DNA of 64,000 nt. It comes from Zygnema circumcarinatum SAG 698-1b (lineage: Eukaryota > Plantae > Zygnematophyceae). The stretch is taken from assembly GCA_037447605.1 (NCBI GenBank), contig CM074808.1, forward strand, positions 372,001 through 436,000, given 5' to 3'. Below the pieces are notes generated by a model that worked only from the letters and a program-made list of their open reading frames with translations, was not told where the DNA came from and made no database searches. The position numbers and the translations under genes are program-made. Below, one piece after another: positions 2,696 through 12,000 of the stretch (position 1 is its first letter; every line of letters begins with the position of its first letter).

Positions 2696-3342
2696 ACAGG
2701 ATCACAGGTGTCCCACCGAGGGACACTGTGCGGACGCGGTAAGGGCACGGAGGTGGGGGGTAGAGACACACCGCCGTCGCACGGTGACCAATGAGATCGG
2801 CGCCACGGTGGTGGAAATTTTTCGATTTAGGGCATCTTGGCAGAGGGGGCAATTCTGGAACCGACGCGATATAAAGCGGTATGAAAGTATTGGATATATC
2901 GCGATCTTACAGCGCTCAATATATTCCGGTTTGGAGGAATGCGTAATATATCTCTATGTTGTAAAAATCAATATAGCGATATATCGCATTGGAAGGCTAC
3001 GTGATATTATTCGAAGCCCTTCCGGCGAATCACAGGCTGCCACGTGCTGGAGGCTCCACGTGGCAAAGGGCCCTTTCCAGACCATTCTCCTCTCCACCTG
3101 CCTCTCTCTCTCTCTCCCTCTGTTATGTGTGTGAGGCAGAGAGAGGGGAGGGAGAGGACAGGCTTGTCTGGCAGCCGCGGATGCTCTCCGTCCCCTTAAA
3201 ATTTGCGCCTTTCTGTACGCGAGAGTGTTGAAACCATAAATGCGCAAAGGCACGAAAGTATCACCATTACAACCCCACCGCCCATTGTTCTATTTCTCCA
3301 GCCCTCCCACCTCCCCCTCTCCTCCTCCTCCCCCTCCGCCCC

Positions 3343-4671
3343 ATGGAGGGAAGCACAGAGAGAGCCAAGCTCCAGGCGGGCGTTCAAGCTCTCCGGCGGT
3401 CAGCAGAAAGTTTGAGCTCTGCTCTGACCTCTGCCCGAGAAAACTTCTCAGAGAGAATTAAATCCTATCTAAATGTGCTAAATAAATTACAGAGCAATCC
3501 AGATAGGGTGAAAAATCCAAAGACTTCGCCGCTTTCAAGTGGGTCTGGTGGGCGGGAGGCGGCCATGGCGAGGGAGAGAGAGAGGGGAGGTAGTGGGGTG
3601 GGAGAGAGAGGGCGGAGGAGAGTGTACGGAAATGCGGAGGTGAAGGTGGAGAGGCTCTATGTAGCGGACGCTCACAAATTGGTTCCGAGAATTTACACTT
3701 TTGGGTAAGGAAGGGAGGGAGTGAGGGGGGGAGGGAGAGAGAAAGACATGGAGAGAGAGACTGAGAGGGAAGTGGGGTGAGGCAGAGTGAAGAGGAGCAA
3801 CTGACAGAGAGACCAGTTTGGAACTGGGAGGGGAGAGAAGGTGTTGTGGGAGAGCGTAAAGGAGAGTCGAGAGAGAGAGGGAGAGAGAGAGAGCGGCACT
3901 GAGCGGCTCTCATTTGCTGGTGCTGTTTAAAAGTCGCCCTAACTTTTCCAATGGATGTTTTCTCGATAATCCGAAAGCCAACCAACTAACCAACCAACCC
4001 TTAATACCATCCCTTGCAGGTATGACTTCAAGAACTGGAATGAGTACTGGGCAATTCTTAACACTGGAGAACTATATTTCGGTCTGCCCCCCGGAGACTT
4101 TCACAATTTTGACTATGAGACGGAGCGGCGGGAGAACCCACATCGATTCCGCCCTTATAAGTTGGATAAAAATCTCATTTCTGGGTTTGAATATAATGGC
4201 AGGGAGATCTCTTTTGAATTAGGGCAAGAGTCTGTGGCTGTAGACAGCGGCACCATTTTTAAACGTGTGGATCCATGCACGAATTTTCGGTTTAACGGAG
4301 TTTTTCGCCATGAAGCTTACGCAGATGCCGTCGAAAGCGCTAATGCAAACGGTTTACCGGGTCAAACCACGTTCCAATTTTCAGAAGATGGAAATTTTAA
4401 GGTTAAGGGATGTAGCTCAGGAAGGTGCTTATTGCCGAGACCTCATGCGTGGGAGCTGAGGGAGAGAGGGAGGCGCATTGAGAGCCGCGGATACGATGCG
4501 GGTGTAGAGAGAGAGGGGCTTTATCACATATTGGAGAATAAAATTGAGCTGGAATATAGCGATGGGAGCGTTGAAAGGGCCTTCTTCTTTCGGTATCCGG
4601 GCGATGAGGCACATATTCTGAGCATCAATGGAGTTAACTATTTTAAGCAGGAGGGTTGTAACTATGGGTAA
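3343..4671 (+). CDS. Two-exon gene (~337 aa), unknown function, bacterial-like beta-rich domain
   Basis: Exon 1 3343-3704 (ATG ... TTT GG|gtaagg), exon 2 4020-4671 (ttgcag|G TAT GAC...TAA). The join gives ...VERLYVADAHKLVPRIYTFGYDFKNWNEYWAILNTGELYFGLPPGDFHNFDYETERRENPHRFRPY...FNGVFRHEAY...TTFQFSEDGNF...GLYHILENKIELEYSDGSVERAFFFRYP...*. An alternative ATG lies at 3565. Confidence 0.8.
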
Positions 4672-5205: not shown

Positions 5206-7503
5206 TTAGGGCTGCCAAAGCTTGAGAGTGCTGTCCTCGCTGAAGGTCGCGAGAAGGTTCCGATGGGGATGATGGGTCACGCCGATCACATCCTTGTCAT
5301 GCACCTGCATGCAACAAAAAGGGGGTTCGAAAAAAAATAGGGTTTGGGAGATGATATGGAAGCTTTCGGAGTCCGAGATACGAAAAAAAAGAAATGGGGT
5401 CTTTTCATCAACTCGATATACGAATGCGTGGCTTAGATTTTCCAGCGCCTTTTATTTTTGTTTCAAGTTTCCAAATTTTTTTTAGGAAAAGTGACTTACA
5501 TTCATGAGATGTTCGAGCTTCCCGGATTGATACCCAAAGCAGTACAAATTTCTGTTACATAAATCCCCACCGTCAAAACACACGGCAGAGAGCTCAAAAG
5601 ACTTAAAAAAAAACTGAAAAAGGGCTGTACGGGTTTAGGGCAAGAAACAAAATATAGCTTCTTAAAAAAAATAGGGTTCAGAAGTTGGTCCAATGGAAGC
5701 TGCACACCTGTCCTCTCCCACGCAATAGATCCAATCTCCTTTTGGAGATAGGCACGCCCCGACAAAATCTCCTCCTTCTCTCTTACCCGAAGAAAAACTT
5801 TTCACCACCTGACCGCATATAATTCAACCACCCAAAATCAATCTTGAAAATAAACTACTCCTTTCCTCCCACCCCTTTTTTACCCATTCCAAGTATAATG
5901 AGTTTTAGGGGCTTTTAGGGTTTTTAGGGTTTTTAATATGTGCCATATTGAAGCGTTAGTTCTTTAGTTGAAGTTCCCTTACATCTCCTTTTCTTCGGGC
6001 AGGAAAAGAAAAAAAGAAAAAAATAGGGTTACCTGCCCTTGATAAGTCATCACATATATCGTCGATGATCGATTGCATACAACAATTTGATCGATATTTT
6101 TGGGCAGAGCCATAACGGAATTCACAGATGCGTCTCCTCCCTATATCCCAAAACAGAGAACCGAAAAGACAACAATAATAATTGCATACTGATCCCTTTA
6201 ATAAATTCCTCCCTCCATCCCACCCTATCGTCTCCATCCCTACGCTCCTCCTCTCCACTCCTCTGCTCTCTCTCTCTCTCTCTCTTCGCCTTTCCTCCAG
6301 CCCTTATCTTCACTTCCCCCCCTTCTTCTCTCCCCCTCTCCTTCCTCTCCTTCTCTCCTCCCCCCTTCCCTCCTCACTCCCGCTTCCCTCCTCTCTCTCT
6401 CTCTCTCTTCTCCTTTCCTCCAGCCCTTCTCCTCTTCCTCCTCTCTCTCTTCCCTCCCTCACACTTCCCTCCCTTCTTCTCTCCTCCCTCTCCTTCCTCT
6501 CCTTCTCTCCTCCCCCCTTCCCTCACTCCCGCTTCTCTCATCTCTCCCACCCTCTCTCTCCGAGAATCACCGAATGCCACAGACCGCATTCGAATAGGGT
6601 TTGAAAATGCCAAAAGCGAAGCATCAAGACTTCCTTGGAAATGCCTTCACTCGAAACCTAAAAAAAAAAAAAAAACTCGAAATCTAATCTGAGGAAATGT
6701 TTTGAGCATTGGGACTTTTAGGGTGTGCGCTTACTCGAAGGGGCGGCGGAGGTTTGAACGTTTGTAAACAATCTTGTGACTTGGCATCCCAAACCTGCAC
6801 ATAACATAGGAAGTAGAGAGAGAGAGCGGGAGAGAGAGAGAGAGAGAAAAATAAGAACCACACATTTAACTTCAAAAGAAAAGGGTGCGAAAATTTTACA
6901 GAAATTGGCAGTCATTGTCTCTCTCTCTCTCCACTCTCTCCCACTCTCTCTTCCTCTCTCACCTTCACACTCCCATCACTTGACGCTGTCACGACGCGCA
7001 GTCCGTCCGAAGAAAAGATGACATTATTCACATATGAAGTGTGCCCACGGAACTCCTTCAAAGTTTTTCCTGACTTCAGGCCATGAATCCTGTCATTCAC
7101 AAGAAAAAAAAAAGGGGGGGAGGTCACAAAAAATCACAACGGAAAAATCATATTTCACCTGAAACCGTTTCAATGATACAAATGATGTTGCGGAGTGAGG
7201 CACGTAGAAGCAAGATTAACAAGGAAACAAAAAGGCAGAATGAGTTGTATTGTAGGAAGAGTTAGAGAAGGTTGAAGGGGGAGGGAGAGGGGGTTGAGAG
7301 AGCGTCTCGTGAAGTAAAAACGAAGGCGAGAGAAAGAGGGGGCGAGGGAGAGAGTAGGGAAGGTAAGAGAGGGGAAGGAGTTCAGTTGGAGGCAGGGAAA
7401 GAGAGAGAGGGAGGGAGAGACAGAAAAAGAGAGAGAAAGGGAGAGAGAGGGCGAGAAAAGGAGAGAGAGAGAGAGAAAAAGAGAGCGAGAGAGAGAGAGA
7501 AAA

Positions 7504-7539
<36 letters not shown>

Positions 7540-9001
7540 CGAGAAAAGGAGAGAGAGAGAGAGAGAGAGAGCGCATGGGTGCCTACTTTGCGGTTCCGTC
7601 AAAGGAGCAGCTCAACAGTTGGCTTCCGTCCCTTGAAAACGTGACACTTGTCACGCCCTGCGAGTGCGCCTTCTCAAAGCGGCGGAGACACTGGCCTGTA
7701 CGGACGCGCCAAACCTGCGGGCAGGGGGGAAATTTTTTTTTTTTTGTTTTTTTTTTACATGGCTTACTCTCTCTACCGTTTGGCTTTTGGGTCCATTTTT
7801 AGCTACTCCAAAAACGTACGAAACAGCGAGAATTGAGGGGCGCGGTTTTACCAGAAACGTGGTTTGGGGTTTAAAGTTGAACATGGTTAGGCTCCTCTCT
7901 CTCTATTACACTCTCTCTCCCCCACTCTATCACTCCCACTATCACTCCCTCTCTATCTCTACCACTCTCTCTCCCACTCTCTCTTCACTCTCTCTCTCCC
8001 ACTCTCTCACTACCCCTCTATCTCGCCCACTTTCTCACCCACTCACTCATCCCTTTCAAACCTTTCACTACACGGAACCCCTTTTACTTATTTTCTCAGT
8101 TTTTCATTCAAAAGGGGACTCGAAATTTACCTTCACTTTCCCGTCCTGCGAGCCGGAAGCGAGCAGTTCGCTGTCACGGCTCCACGCAACGCATAGAACA
8201 GCGTCCTCGTGCATCATGAATGCATCCTGAAATTTTCACATTGTTTCAAAATCTCATTATAATATTGCATCATGTTTTGGTCCAGTTTCCCAACTACATC
8301 CCTTTTTCTTTTGCAGGTAGTGACAGACAGAGCAAGAAAGAGAGAGAGAGAGAGAGAGAGACAGAGGGAGAGAGAGACAGAGAGAGAGAGGGAGAGAGAC
8401 AGCGAGAGAGAGGGAGAGAGACAGAGAGTGAGGGGGAGAGAGACAGAGAGAGAGATGTACTATTACTTAGAAATGAATCGGCAAGCATGAGAGAGAAGGG
8501 GGGAACTCACATCCGCTTGATATTGAAGGTCTAATTTCAGCTTTCCGCTCAAATAATCCCATATCTGCCTCGCATTGAAAACATAACTTTTTTTAGCGAA
8601 TGTCCCATCGATAGTAGTAGAGCTAAGTTTTGGAACCTTTGAAGTTCCAAGAATCTTTCTAACATGAGGCTAAATATAATTTGGAATATCAGATACATAT
8701 AGATGAGATAGACATAGACGTAAACTTTATCGGAAAAAAAGAAAACGATACATTATTATGTGTTAAAAATTGCACCTCAATGAATCCGTCGACAGAGGAG
8801 GAGGCGAGGTATTGCCCATCGAGGGAGAATTGTGCGCTTTCAGGATGACTCTTTTTGCCGAACTGCGAACCGTTAAGAAAGAAACTCAGAACTTACAAAC
8901 ACAAATTTCCTTAAAGCAAAAAACAGTTAAAAAGTCCCTCAAGTTCCTTAAGAATAAATCAGCTGGCGGCAGAGATTCTACGTTCACACTGGGCAATCAG
9001 T

Positions 9002-9040
<39 letters not shown>

Positions 9041-12000
9041 GACAAACAGATCGAGAAAGTGAGTGAAGGAAGAGGTGAAAAATTATGAAAGACACGAGAG
9101 AGAAGAGAGAGAATAAGGAGAAAGAGTGAGACAGCAAGAGAGGCGGGAGGGAGAGAGAGAAAGGAGGGAGGGAGAGAGGGGAAGAGTCGAGAAACATGAG
9201 TGGGCCAAGAGAGAATAGAGAAGAAAGAGAAACGGGTGAGTCAGAGAGGGAAAAGGGGGGGTAGAGAAAAAGAGAGGGAGAGAGAGAGAGAGAGGGAGGG
9301 AGAGAGGACCTTGATGGAGTGCAGTAGCTGCGTGGGATACATCTCCTCCTCATCTGCTTTAACTGCTGCCGTTCCGCGGAACAGATCGAACTGCGTGCCA
9401 GGTGGCAGGAGCCCTGCATCATGCAACATTAGGGTTTGCAATTTCAGCAATTTTAGACATGAATTTCCTATTGGGGCTTCCTATGTTCAGTTAGGCTTTC
9501 CATGCTTCTAAAATCCGTCGGAAAGGAATAGGTGTTCGAGAGAGAGAGAAACAGAGAGAGAGGGGAAGAGAGAAAGGGAGAGTGAGAGAGGGAGGGAGAG
9601 AGAGAGGGGAAGAGAGAAAGGGAGAGTGAGAGAGGGAGGGAGAGAGAAAGAGGGGAAAAGAGGATGGGAGAGTGAGAGAGGGAGGGGGGGAGAGAGAGAG
9701 AGAGAGGAAGCGAGAAAGGGAGAGGGAGGGAGGGAGGGAGAGAGAGAGAGGGTTTTGAACCTTGATGCTGCTGCCACTTCAAGGCCTGTCCGAGAAGCAC
9801 CATGAGTCGTGAAGGGGGGACAACTGTCACCTCTTGAGAAATGGCTGCAATACTCCAAAGGAAAAAAAATATACAATACAATACGTTAAGATACAAAAAA
9901 ATAGCTGAGAGCTTCCCCCTCCTCTTTCTCTTAGATAAATAGGTCAAGAGTCACCAGATGAACAGGAAAATTTTAACTAAATTTTTTGTTACGAAGCTTT
10001 TGAGGAATTTTCTAGGGCTAATCGACCAACTTAACGTTGAAATATTCGTGGAAGTAAAAGATTGGAAAGTTCTTAAGCTCACAAGTTCAGAAAAAATCTC
10101 ACCGTGGGCAATTTGAGCTCTCCTTTTCTCCTTGGTGGAGTCCTGATAAGCCTGAAATCCACCCAATCCGAACAGCCAATTCCAAACCCTAAAACTCAAT
10201 AAAACCCCTTCTCCTCCAAATTACAAAAAAAAAAAAAAACTTGAAACCTCACTCCTTCCGAGCAACTCTCACAACCCCAATTTCTTAAAAGATCCCATTT
10301 TTCAACCATTAGAAAGAAACATTAACCAAATAAACAGAGTTCACTCCTTGATACTTACCTCTTTTGGATCGAAGTATGTTCGCACAAGAAGATGTTCGAG
10401 TCGCAAGTATCGTTCGGGCTCTTCCTGTTTCATGATCGCCATTGCATGCGTTTGCCGCAAAACCGAGCGAGCAGTATCCAGCTCTCTCAGCTCGATCATC
10501 TCCAGCACAATCTGCATAAAGAATTTTCAAAAAAAAGAAAACAAAAAGAAAAAAAAAACAGGAATGGAAACAAATAGAAAACATCACACACCAAAGAAAG
10601 AAAATAGAAAGTAAAAGGGCTCATTGTTGACCGTGGACTATGTTAGTGGTTAGAAGGTAGAAAGGATTGCAATCTAGTCTTTTTCTGAATTCTTCTCTCT
10701 CCGACTCTCGCTTGTGCTCCTTCTCCCTATTTCTCACTTTATCCCTTCCACCCTCTCAATGTTGTTCCTCTCTCGCTCCTCCTCCCCCTCCCCTCCTCCC
10801 GATTCCCTCCCTCTCCACCCTCCCCCCTCCCCCCTCCCTCCCTCCCCATTGCCTCCCTCCCCCTCCCCCTCCCTCCCTCCCCATTGCCTCCCCCCCCCTC
10901 CCTTCCCCCTCCCCCCTTTCTCCCCCTTGCCTCCCCCTCCTCCCTCCCTCCCTCCTCCCTCCCTCCCCCCTCCCTCTCCTCCCTCCCTCCCTCCCTCCTC
11001 CCTCCCTCCCCCTTGCCTCCCTCTCACCCCTCCTCCCTCCCTCCCCCTCCCCCTCCCTCCCTCCCTCCCTCCCTCCTCCCTCCCCCTTCCCTCCCCTCCC
11101 CCTCCCTCCCCCCTCCCTCTCCTCCCTCCCTCCCTCCCTCCTCCCTCCCTCCCCCTTGCCTCCCTCCTCCACCCTCCTCCTCCCTCCCCCTCCCCCTCCC
11201 TCCCCCCTCCCTCTCCTCCCTCCTCCCCCTCCCCCCTCCCTCCCCCCTCCCTCCCCCTCCCTCCCCCCCTCCCCTCCCTCCTCCTCCTCCCTCCCTCCTC
11301 CCTCCTCCCTCCCCCCTTCCCTCCCCCCTCCCCCCCTCCCTCCCTCCCTCCCTCCCTCCTCCTCCTCCCTCCCCCTTCCCTCCCCCCTCCCTCCCTCCCC
11401 CTCCCTCCCTCTCCTCCCTCCCCCCCTCCCTCCCCCCCGTCCCCCACCTGTTCGTAGAGGTCCTGCAGCGCGGCCCGCGGCAGCGCGAGCGGCGCGAGGG
11501 CGGGCAGGAGCGCGTCCCACCTCCCCGCGAGCGCGTCCGCCCTCAGCGCCTCCGCGCTCTCGACCGCGTTCAGGGCGACGCCGCACTCCGCCTCCAGGGC
11601 CGCGCCCGTCTGCGCGAGCCCGTTCTCGCGGCAGAATTGGAGGACGATCTTCACCACGCTGGTAAACAAGGGGGGGGGAGGGTATATGGGAAATTAGGAG
11701 TGAAGGGGAAGTGGGAGGTCGGGGAGGTTATGAGGGGTGGGGACGATGCTGGAGAGAGTGAGAAGGAGGGGAGGGGGAGGGGAAGGGGGTGGATGCTTTA
11801 CGCTTCAGAACAGAGTTCTATGAAGGAGGGAAGAGGTCAAGGTGCAGGGGAAGGGGCGGGGAGGAGGGGAAGGGGAAGGGAGGGAAGGAGGGAGGGAGGG
11901 AGGGAGGGAGGGAGGGAGGGGAGGGAAGGAGGGAGGGGAGGGAAGGGAGGGAAGGAGGGAGGGAGGGAGGGAGGGAGGTAAGGAGGGGTCCACGGAAGGC

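Follow-up and report, generated by a model that had tools for sequence, protein, structure and literature searches.

A spliced gene of probable bacterial origin encodes a predicted pair of lipocalin-like barrels in Zygnema circumcarinatum and other Zygnematophyceae

Organization of the locus

The window analyzed here is a 64,000-nucleotide stretch of the Zygnema circumcarinatum SAG 698-1b genome, and all coordinates refer to it. It contains a compact forward-strand gene facing a convergent WD40 gene. The features of the locus are as follows.

3200..3342, + strand: transcribed, CT-rich 5' leader, covered by RNA contigs from 3200
3343..3704, + strand: exon 1, with the start codon, the N-terminal extension and the first strand of predicted barrel 1
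3705..4019, + strand: sole intron, GT..AG, 315 nt, phase 2 within a Gly codon, rich in GA repeats
4020..4278, + strand: first part of exon 2, remainder of predicted barrel 1, bounded according to the 47-sequence alignment
4279..4671, + strand: second part of exon 2, predicted barrel 2 (Lipocalin_4-like), assigned from structure matches and the Lipocalin_4 matches of relatives
~5209..10500, - strand: convergent multi-exon WD40 gene, from six-frame segments, with Pfam WD40 matches in four exon pieces

On the + strand of the window sequence, an ATG at 3343 opens a reading frame that runs to 3708. The donor TTTGG/GTAAG (the slash marks the splice site) places the end of exon 1 at 3704, and the acceptor CCTTGCAG/G, which follows a pyrimidine-rich tract, places the start of exon 2 at 4020. 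The frame of exon 2 is open up to a TAA at 4669-4671. Together, the 362 nt of exon 1 and the 652 nt of exon 2 amount to 1014 nt, or 337 codons and a stop. The compact one-intron GT-AG gene proposed in the first-pass annotation was thus borne out (exons 3343-3704 and 4020-4671), and all of the motifs quoted there are present in the translations: ERLY..., YWAILNTGELYFGLPPGDFHNFDY, FNGVFRH, FQFSEDGNF and GLYHILENKIELEYSDGSVERAFFF. No paralogue of the gene was found elsewhere in the 64-kb window.

The product begins with a lineage-specific N-terminal extension encoded by approximately 3343-3636, after which barrel 1 opens with its first strand at approximately 3637 (EVKVERLYVADAHKLVPRIYTFG). Barrel 1 is the N-terminal lipocalin-like unit and carries the motif ...LNTGELYFGLP...FDY... 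in the first part of exon 2. Barrel 2 holds an algal-specific disordered loop and is followed by the stop codon. The product of exon 1 contains neither a hydrophobic export signal nor a match to PsbP, and its extension is polar.

Transcription and splicing

RNA evidence was obtained in the form of assembled contigs, and the stretch is represented in runs from eight studies. An exact 315-nt GT..AG skip at the intron of the gene is present in contigs of four runs, each from a different study; the spliced contigs have a depth of 109-281, compared with approximately 14 for the intron in two of these runs. The 3704/4020 junction, for which RNA support had been named as a check, is therefore both expressed and spliced. 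Two RNA contigs reach at least 39-78 nt upstream of 3200. The leader that they cover also contains an out-of-frame ATG at 3240, which opens a 73-codon reading frame (3240-3461, + strand) that overlaps the main start at 3343 and may act as an upstream ORF.

Another organism provides an uninterrupted cDNA for comparison. P0001 is a 357-residue protein, 59-63% identical to the window protein, encoded on intron-less 1.6-kb contigs from three runs (including SRR8128903), and its cDNA is continuous over the position of the junction (...LVPKLYTFGYDFNHWNEYW...). As in the window, the 5' leader of this cDNA is CT-rich. P0001 was the only close relative found in the 90% clustered collection, from which the window's own protein is absent. 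The protein start M-E-G/A is common to the window protein, P0001 and the Closterium proteins.

Integration in the host genome

The WD40 gene, which from its exon peptides we take to be SMU1-like, has many small exons and ends approximately 540 bp from the stop codon of the gene on the opposite strand. RNA contigs of two runs extend 1.9-2.5 kb past 4900, which suggests that the 3' ends of the two genes overlap or are merged. The long ORFs flanking the gene have no Pfam match because the exons of its neighbors are short. The GC content of the gene is 0.47-0.53, compared with 0.475 for the window, and GC3 likewise matches the window. Microsatellite-like GA/CT (AG-rich) tracts occur at 3560-3900, 6200-6650, 7200-7600, 8250-8500 and 9000-9800. 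They fill introns and intergenic DNA, and many long ORFs on either strand are spurious products of them; one such tract encodes the linker of exon 1, which is rich in Arg, Glu and Gly.

Genomic DNA of Closterium sp. Yama58-4 contains an orthologue whose exon 1 ends ...TTCGG/GTATG and whose exon 2 starts ...CAG/C TAT, so that its intron interrupts the same Gly codon in the same phase as in the window. This Closterium intron measures 1.3 kb (L004:6637-7939), and a YSFKEWTEYWALLSTGE... segment is repeated in it in tandem, in roughly seven copies that are partly degenerate. The repeated unit corresponds to the first ~22 codons of exon 2, and the array looks like an expansion of the acceptor-side exon edge within the intron. 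The Closterium gene models P0002 and P0065 read through the intron and the repeat sequence after ...LTFG. Model P0004 splices out an open in-frame stretch (L004:8318-8494) that forms part of barrel 2, and it lacks profile positions 148-214. All three of these public models look mis-annotated.

A gene that has bacterial relatives (see below) and a compact one-intron structure unlike that of its neighbor might be suspected of being bacterial contamination or the result of mis-assembly. Against this stand the removal of a spliceosomal GT..AG intron in RNA contigs from four studies, the same intron site in Closterium genomic DNA, a CT-rich leader resembling that of the orthologous cDNA, a host-like composition, the WD40 gene only 540 bp away, and the representation of the stretch in runs of eight studies. 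The first-pass annotation had argued from the intron that the gene is not a contaminant, and these observations uphold that view. The gene is integrated in the host nuclear genome; contamination is effectively excluded, and we regard it as hardly conceivable.

Relatives are confined to Zygnematophyceae and bacteria

Scans against Pfam and NCBIfam, in which the two exons were searched separately, returned nothing meaningful for the window protein. Exon 1 showed sub-threshold matches to L-fibroin, TPR_MLP1_2 and THOC7, attributable to biased composition or to coiled-coil character. PDB sequences searched with a profile yielded nothing beyond matches to the WD40 region of Apaf-1 (E 0.43), which are due to chance. 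A HMMER profile in which P0001 and the window's two exon pieces formed separate rows was then used in an exhaustive search of 1.84 billion representatives; 64 relatives were recovered at the threshold of E <= 0.001. P0030, P0035 and P0052 proved to be repeat-protein false positives (WD40 or FG-GAP-like repeats) and were excluded from alignments and trees.

Eukaryotes among the 64 matches are exclusively Zygnematophyceae, namely several Closterium strains, Netrium digitus and two transcriptome contigs. When a word search was made with a profile of algal sequences alone, the sole additions were further Closterium proteins. No other eukaryote was found by HMMER in the 1.84 billion representatives or by the word search, in collections from which some streptophyte algal annotations are perhaps missing; EukProt entries were included and are the source of the Netrium match. 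The first-pass annotation had expected bacterial relatives and no land-plant family, and neither a land-plant nor a wider eukaryotic family emerged from these searches.

The named bacterial matches are hypothetical proteins from metagenome-assembled genomes (MAGs) of five phyla, with sources in Meiothermus (E 2e-40), Chitinophagaceae/Chitinophagales, Fimbriimonadales, Blastocatellia and Gemmatimonadales. More than 15 bacterial proteins match the profile at E 2e-40 to 1e-11 over both barrels (profile positions ~10-250). Many unnamed metagenome matches bear bacterial-type signal peptides or lipoboxes, and the unnamed non-eukaryotic matches look bacterial. All members of the gene family are named 'hypothetical' or 'unnamed' in the databases. 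Peptide patterns drawn from the algal proteins led to no confirmed relative in a scan of bacterial and archaeal species genomes, and the pattern of the closest bacterial clade hit only four MAG loci among 185,579 species genomes. The 47-sequence alignment was too divergent to give a search pattern, and a feature-based Atlas search returned leads at 0.90-0.91 only.

The conserved region is a predicted tandem duplication of a Lipocalin_4-like unit

Structural predictions were made on the orthologous domain (P0001 residues 108-357) using AF2 and the 47-sequence alignment. The model is all-beta with two disordered loops (pLDDT 83, pTM 0.79). Whole-domain matches in the ESM Atlas have TM scores of 0.58-0.66 and all fall in bacterial clusters, some of them with Lipocalin_4. 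In VIA-align comparisons with the PDB, the C-terminal half (model residues 112-250) matched 3hty and 4gzv at Z 8.4 and 2jmb and 5jk2 at Z 8.0, scores that are middling by the calibration of the tool, within a uniform match list; the superpositions with these bacterial barrels have rmsd values of 2.3-3.9 over 79-99 residues. Foldseek assigned a probability of 1.00 to YedD (4hwm), BACUNI_03114 (2mhd) and Atu4866 (2jmb) with the P0001 model. The C-half thus resembles the small antiparallel barrel of BT_0869 (3hty), BACOVA_00364 (4gzv), Atu4866, Tp0751 (5jk2) and YedD.

The N-terminal half folded alone with a pLDDT of 93, and its structural matches are weak (Z <= 4.6), so structure alone does not show a barrel in this half. 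The claim is borne instead by the internal repeat: hhalign aligns the N-half with the C-half at a probability of 95.6% (E 1.2e-8, 105 columns), and this homology identifies the conserved region as a tandem duplication of one Lipocalin_4-like unit. On sequence grounds, then, the ~230-residue conserved region is a predicted tandem pair of Lipocalin_4-like barrels.

At the family level, PF13648 (Lipocalin_4) is matched by 31 of the 47 aligned relatives at E <= 0.1, with a best value of 1.1e-7. P0017 is the sole relative above the gathering score (23.1 versus 22.4 bits). The P0001 domain scores 14.5 bits (E 0.066), below the gathering score, and exon 2 of the window gives no match even at E 10. 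These matches suggest that the gene family is a divergent, duplicated relative of Lipocalin_4, and it is not a demonstrable member by the Pfam threshold. Compared with single PF13648-type barrels, it has two fused units, the N-terminal one very divergent (best Z 4.6). Within PF13648 itself, few functions have been assigned. The suggestion that the protein is a lipocalin-like barrel therefore holds at the level of the family (31/47 relatives with PF13648, C-half Z ~8) and required amendment in one respect, as the region is a tandem pair and not a single barrel.

Neither the window exons nor the relatives match the classical TIL- or CHL-type lipocalin families in Pfam. The plant lipocalin TIL (8wb2) shares a calycin-type barrel with the model at Z 6.0, a likeness at the fold level only; its architecture and origin are unlike those of this gene family, and the two have no sequence relationship. 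Columns conserved in at least 70% of members hold Gly, Pro, aromatic and aliphatic residues, turn Asp and one Asn, with no catalytic-type residue conserved across the family in these columns. Most of the family-conserved residues are retained in the window protein. A His and a Cys are conserved among the algal members.

Bacterial homologues are exported, typically multidomain proteins

The typical bacterial form consists of a signal peptide or lipobox, a domain of ~180 residues with weak similarity to PsbP, and the shared region of ~230 residues. The PsbP (PF01789) matches have E values of 0.005-0.02 and cover residues ~30-170 of P0005, P0007, P0010 and others. Shorter lipoproteins, TPR fusions and GDSL-lipase fusions were also observed. 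The combination of a PsbP-like domain with two Lipocalin_4-like barrels suggests an undescribed family of envelope proteins.

The Meiothermus sp. protein (WP_295395376.1 / MCS7067679.1; P0005, 403 aa) is homologous to the algal proteins across the ~230-residue double barrel (E 2e-40), as is the Chitinophagaceae protein MCX8020830.1 (P0008; E 4e-31 to the algal profile). Identity between the algal proteins and these two is ~31-34%, and they share motifs such as LYVA..., ...GG/TGxxYFGLP...FDY and F..DG.F...G.Y.I..N.LEL.Y.DG...FFF.YPG. On the bacterial side, the proteins begin with a signal peptide or lipobox, continue with the ~180-residue domain of weak PsbP similarity and are encoded without an intron. 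Neither of these two parts is present in the algal proteins, which have acquired an N-terminal extension of their own and whose barrel 2 contains a longer disordered loop.

Examination of bacterial gene neighborhoods revealed no conserved operon and no functional clue; the Meiothermus and Chitinophagaceae genes stand alone. On two metagenome contigs (L008:466-5490 and the JGI contig of P0015), GGDEF, CinA/MoCF-like and rhodanese genes precede the double-barrel gene. This order probably represents synteny of related bacteria, not a functional operon.

Phylogenetic placement and direction of transfer

A tree of 47 domain sequences was computed with IQ-TREE; fragments, Closterium models that nearly duplicate one another and the three false positives had been removed beforehand. 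In this unrooted domain tree the five algal rows are monophyletic (100/99), with the Meiothermus protein as their sister (96/88); four other bacterial proteins complete the clade that encloses both (98/91). The clade formed by the algae and these five bacterial proteins sits, in the same unrooted tree, within a wider family that is entirely bacterial. Since an unrooted tree gives no direction, the internal duplication served to root the family, each half of the domain acting as outgroup to the other. The two sets of halves split at 100/100. In each half-tree the algae are placed several nodes below the root, next to the same bacteria, and SH-aLRT values on the relevant nodes are moderate (82-94). 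The phylogeny asked for in the first-pass annotation thus places the algae among bacteria in the domain tree and in both paralogue-rooted half-trees.

This nesting, together with a distribution that pairs a single algal class with at least five bacterial phyla and several architectures, makes transfer from a bacterium to an alga the best reading of the data. The earlier proposal that a bacterial-type gene was acquired horizontally gains support from the same trees and from the exclusively bacterial relatives outside Zygnematophyceae. We consider it very probable that the gene is of bacterial origin and was acquired by a single capture. The donor cannot be named; the closest bacterial sequences belong to a handful of MAGs from different phyla, apparently produced by related projects.

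Two other histories were considered. The gene could be an ancient eukaryotic gene, or a plastid gene from the cyanobacterial endosymbiont, inherited vertically and lost nearly everywhere but in Zygnematophyceae. A root on the algal stem is compatible with the unrooted tree, one feature-based Atlas lead is a cluster labelled mostly cyanobacterial, and algae are perhaps undersampled in the collections. Vertical descent nevertheless requires many independent losses. It also has to accommodate the lack of any other eukaryote in the 1.84 billion representatives or the word search, EukProt entries included, and the deep position of the algae in both half-trees beside Deinococcota and Bacteroidota MAG proteins; we judge it improbable. 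Transfer in the reverse direction, of an algal invention into bacteria, would fit the rarity of the nearest bacterial clade, with its four loci among 185,579 species genomes. Yet the bacterial members span at least five phyla with far greater sequence diversity and several architectures, the barrel duplication is older than all of these, and the root lies among bacteria, which makes this history highly improbable.

Proposed history and function

Taken as a whole, the observations are best explained, in our view with good confidence, by an expressed nuclear gene that derives from an old bacterial capture and encodes a re-tooled double barrel. A bacterial gene would have been captured once, before the lineages to Zygnema, Netrium and Closterium split. 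Its bacterial ancestors were presumably exported proteins or lipoproteins that acted outside the cytoplasm. After the transfer, the alga would have kept the double barrel alone, without the export signal or the PsbP-like domain, and one intron would have arisen inside barrel 1. As the window and Closterium have the intron site in common, a single gain of this intron, later than the transfer and earlier than the split, is most likely; the same codon and phase in Closterium make the capture older than that split. The protein would also have gained an N-terminal extension of ~95 residues, predicted to consist of a probable helix followed by a low-complexity, Gly/Arg/Glu-rich linker, while the composition of the gene would have shifted to that of the host.

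The present-day product may be a soluble, probably cytosolic and non-enzymatic binder that accommodates a small, probably hydrophobic ligand or a peptide in its barrels, and its N-terminal extension may mediate assembly or localization. We put forward binding of a small ligand or peptide only as a tentative, putative function. Under the same bacterial origin, the product could instead be an enzyme or a protein-protein adaptor and not bind small ligands. Protease inhibition and adaptor functions are known for lipocalin-like barrels, the structure comparison also picked out potempin E, VtrC/ToxS and YedD, and the conserved His and Cys of the algal members could be read in the same way. No polar residue typical of catalysis is conserved family-wide, however, and the gene context suggests no partner; this alternative is possible and, to us, doubtful. 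For the putative binder, the helix might moreover couple ligand binding to a partner, a lineage-specific parallel to the origin of the PYL receptors from another ligand-binding fold; the bacterial family might then comprise undescribed envelope ligand-binding proteins. We hold this extension of the proposal to be unlikely.

Comparison with known gene gains

Cheng and colleagues reportedly described, in 2019, GRAS and PYL-like genes gained from bacteria. Literature linking Zygnematophyceae, horizontal transfer and lipocalin-like proteins was sought, and none was found. Bacterial gene gains in Zygnematophyceae are otherwise well documented and include WI12, subtilase domains and cell-wall enzymes (PMC11096116). 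Published screens depend on Pfam domains or on occurrence in land plants, and no reference to the double-barrel family was found in them. A screen built on Pfam would overlook this family, and the lack of both a Pfam model of its own and a land-plant member makes it a clean additional case of bacterial gene capture.

The case illustrates a gene that gained one intron after transfer, at a site common across orders, and lost its export signal, and it can help to date transfers within Zygnematophyceae. It also defines an uncharacterized bacterial double-barrel family and points to a secreted bacterial module that was re-tooled for what is probably intracellular use. Its value is modest pending a ligand or a phenotype. 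Compared with the known gains of Zygnematophyceae and land plants, the double-barrel family differs in having no Pfam domain of its own and in being, so far, found in Zygnematophyceae only and not in land plants. It follows the same pattern as those gains: a bacterial-type gene, intron gain, expression and class-wide retention.
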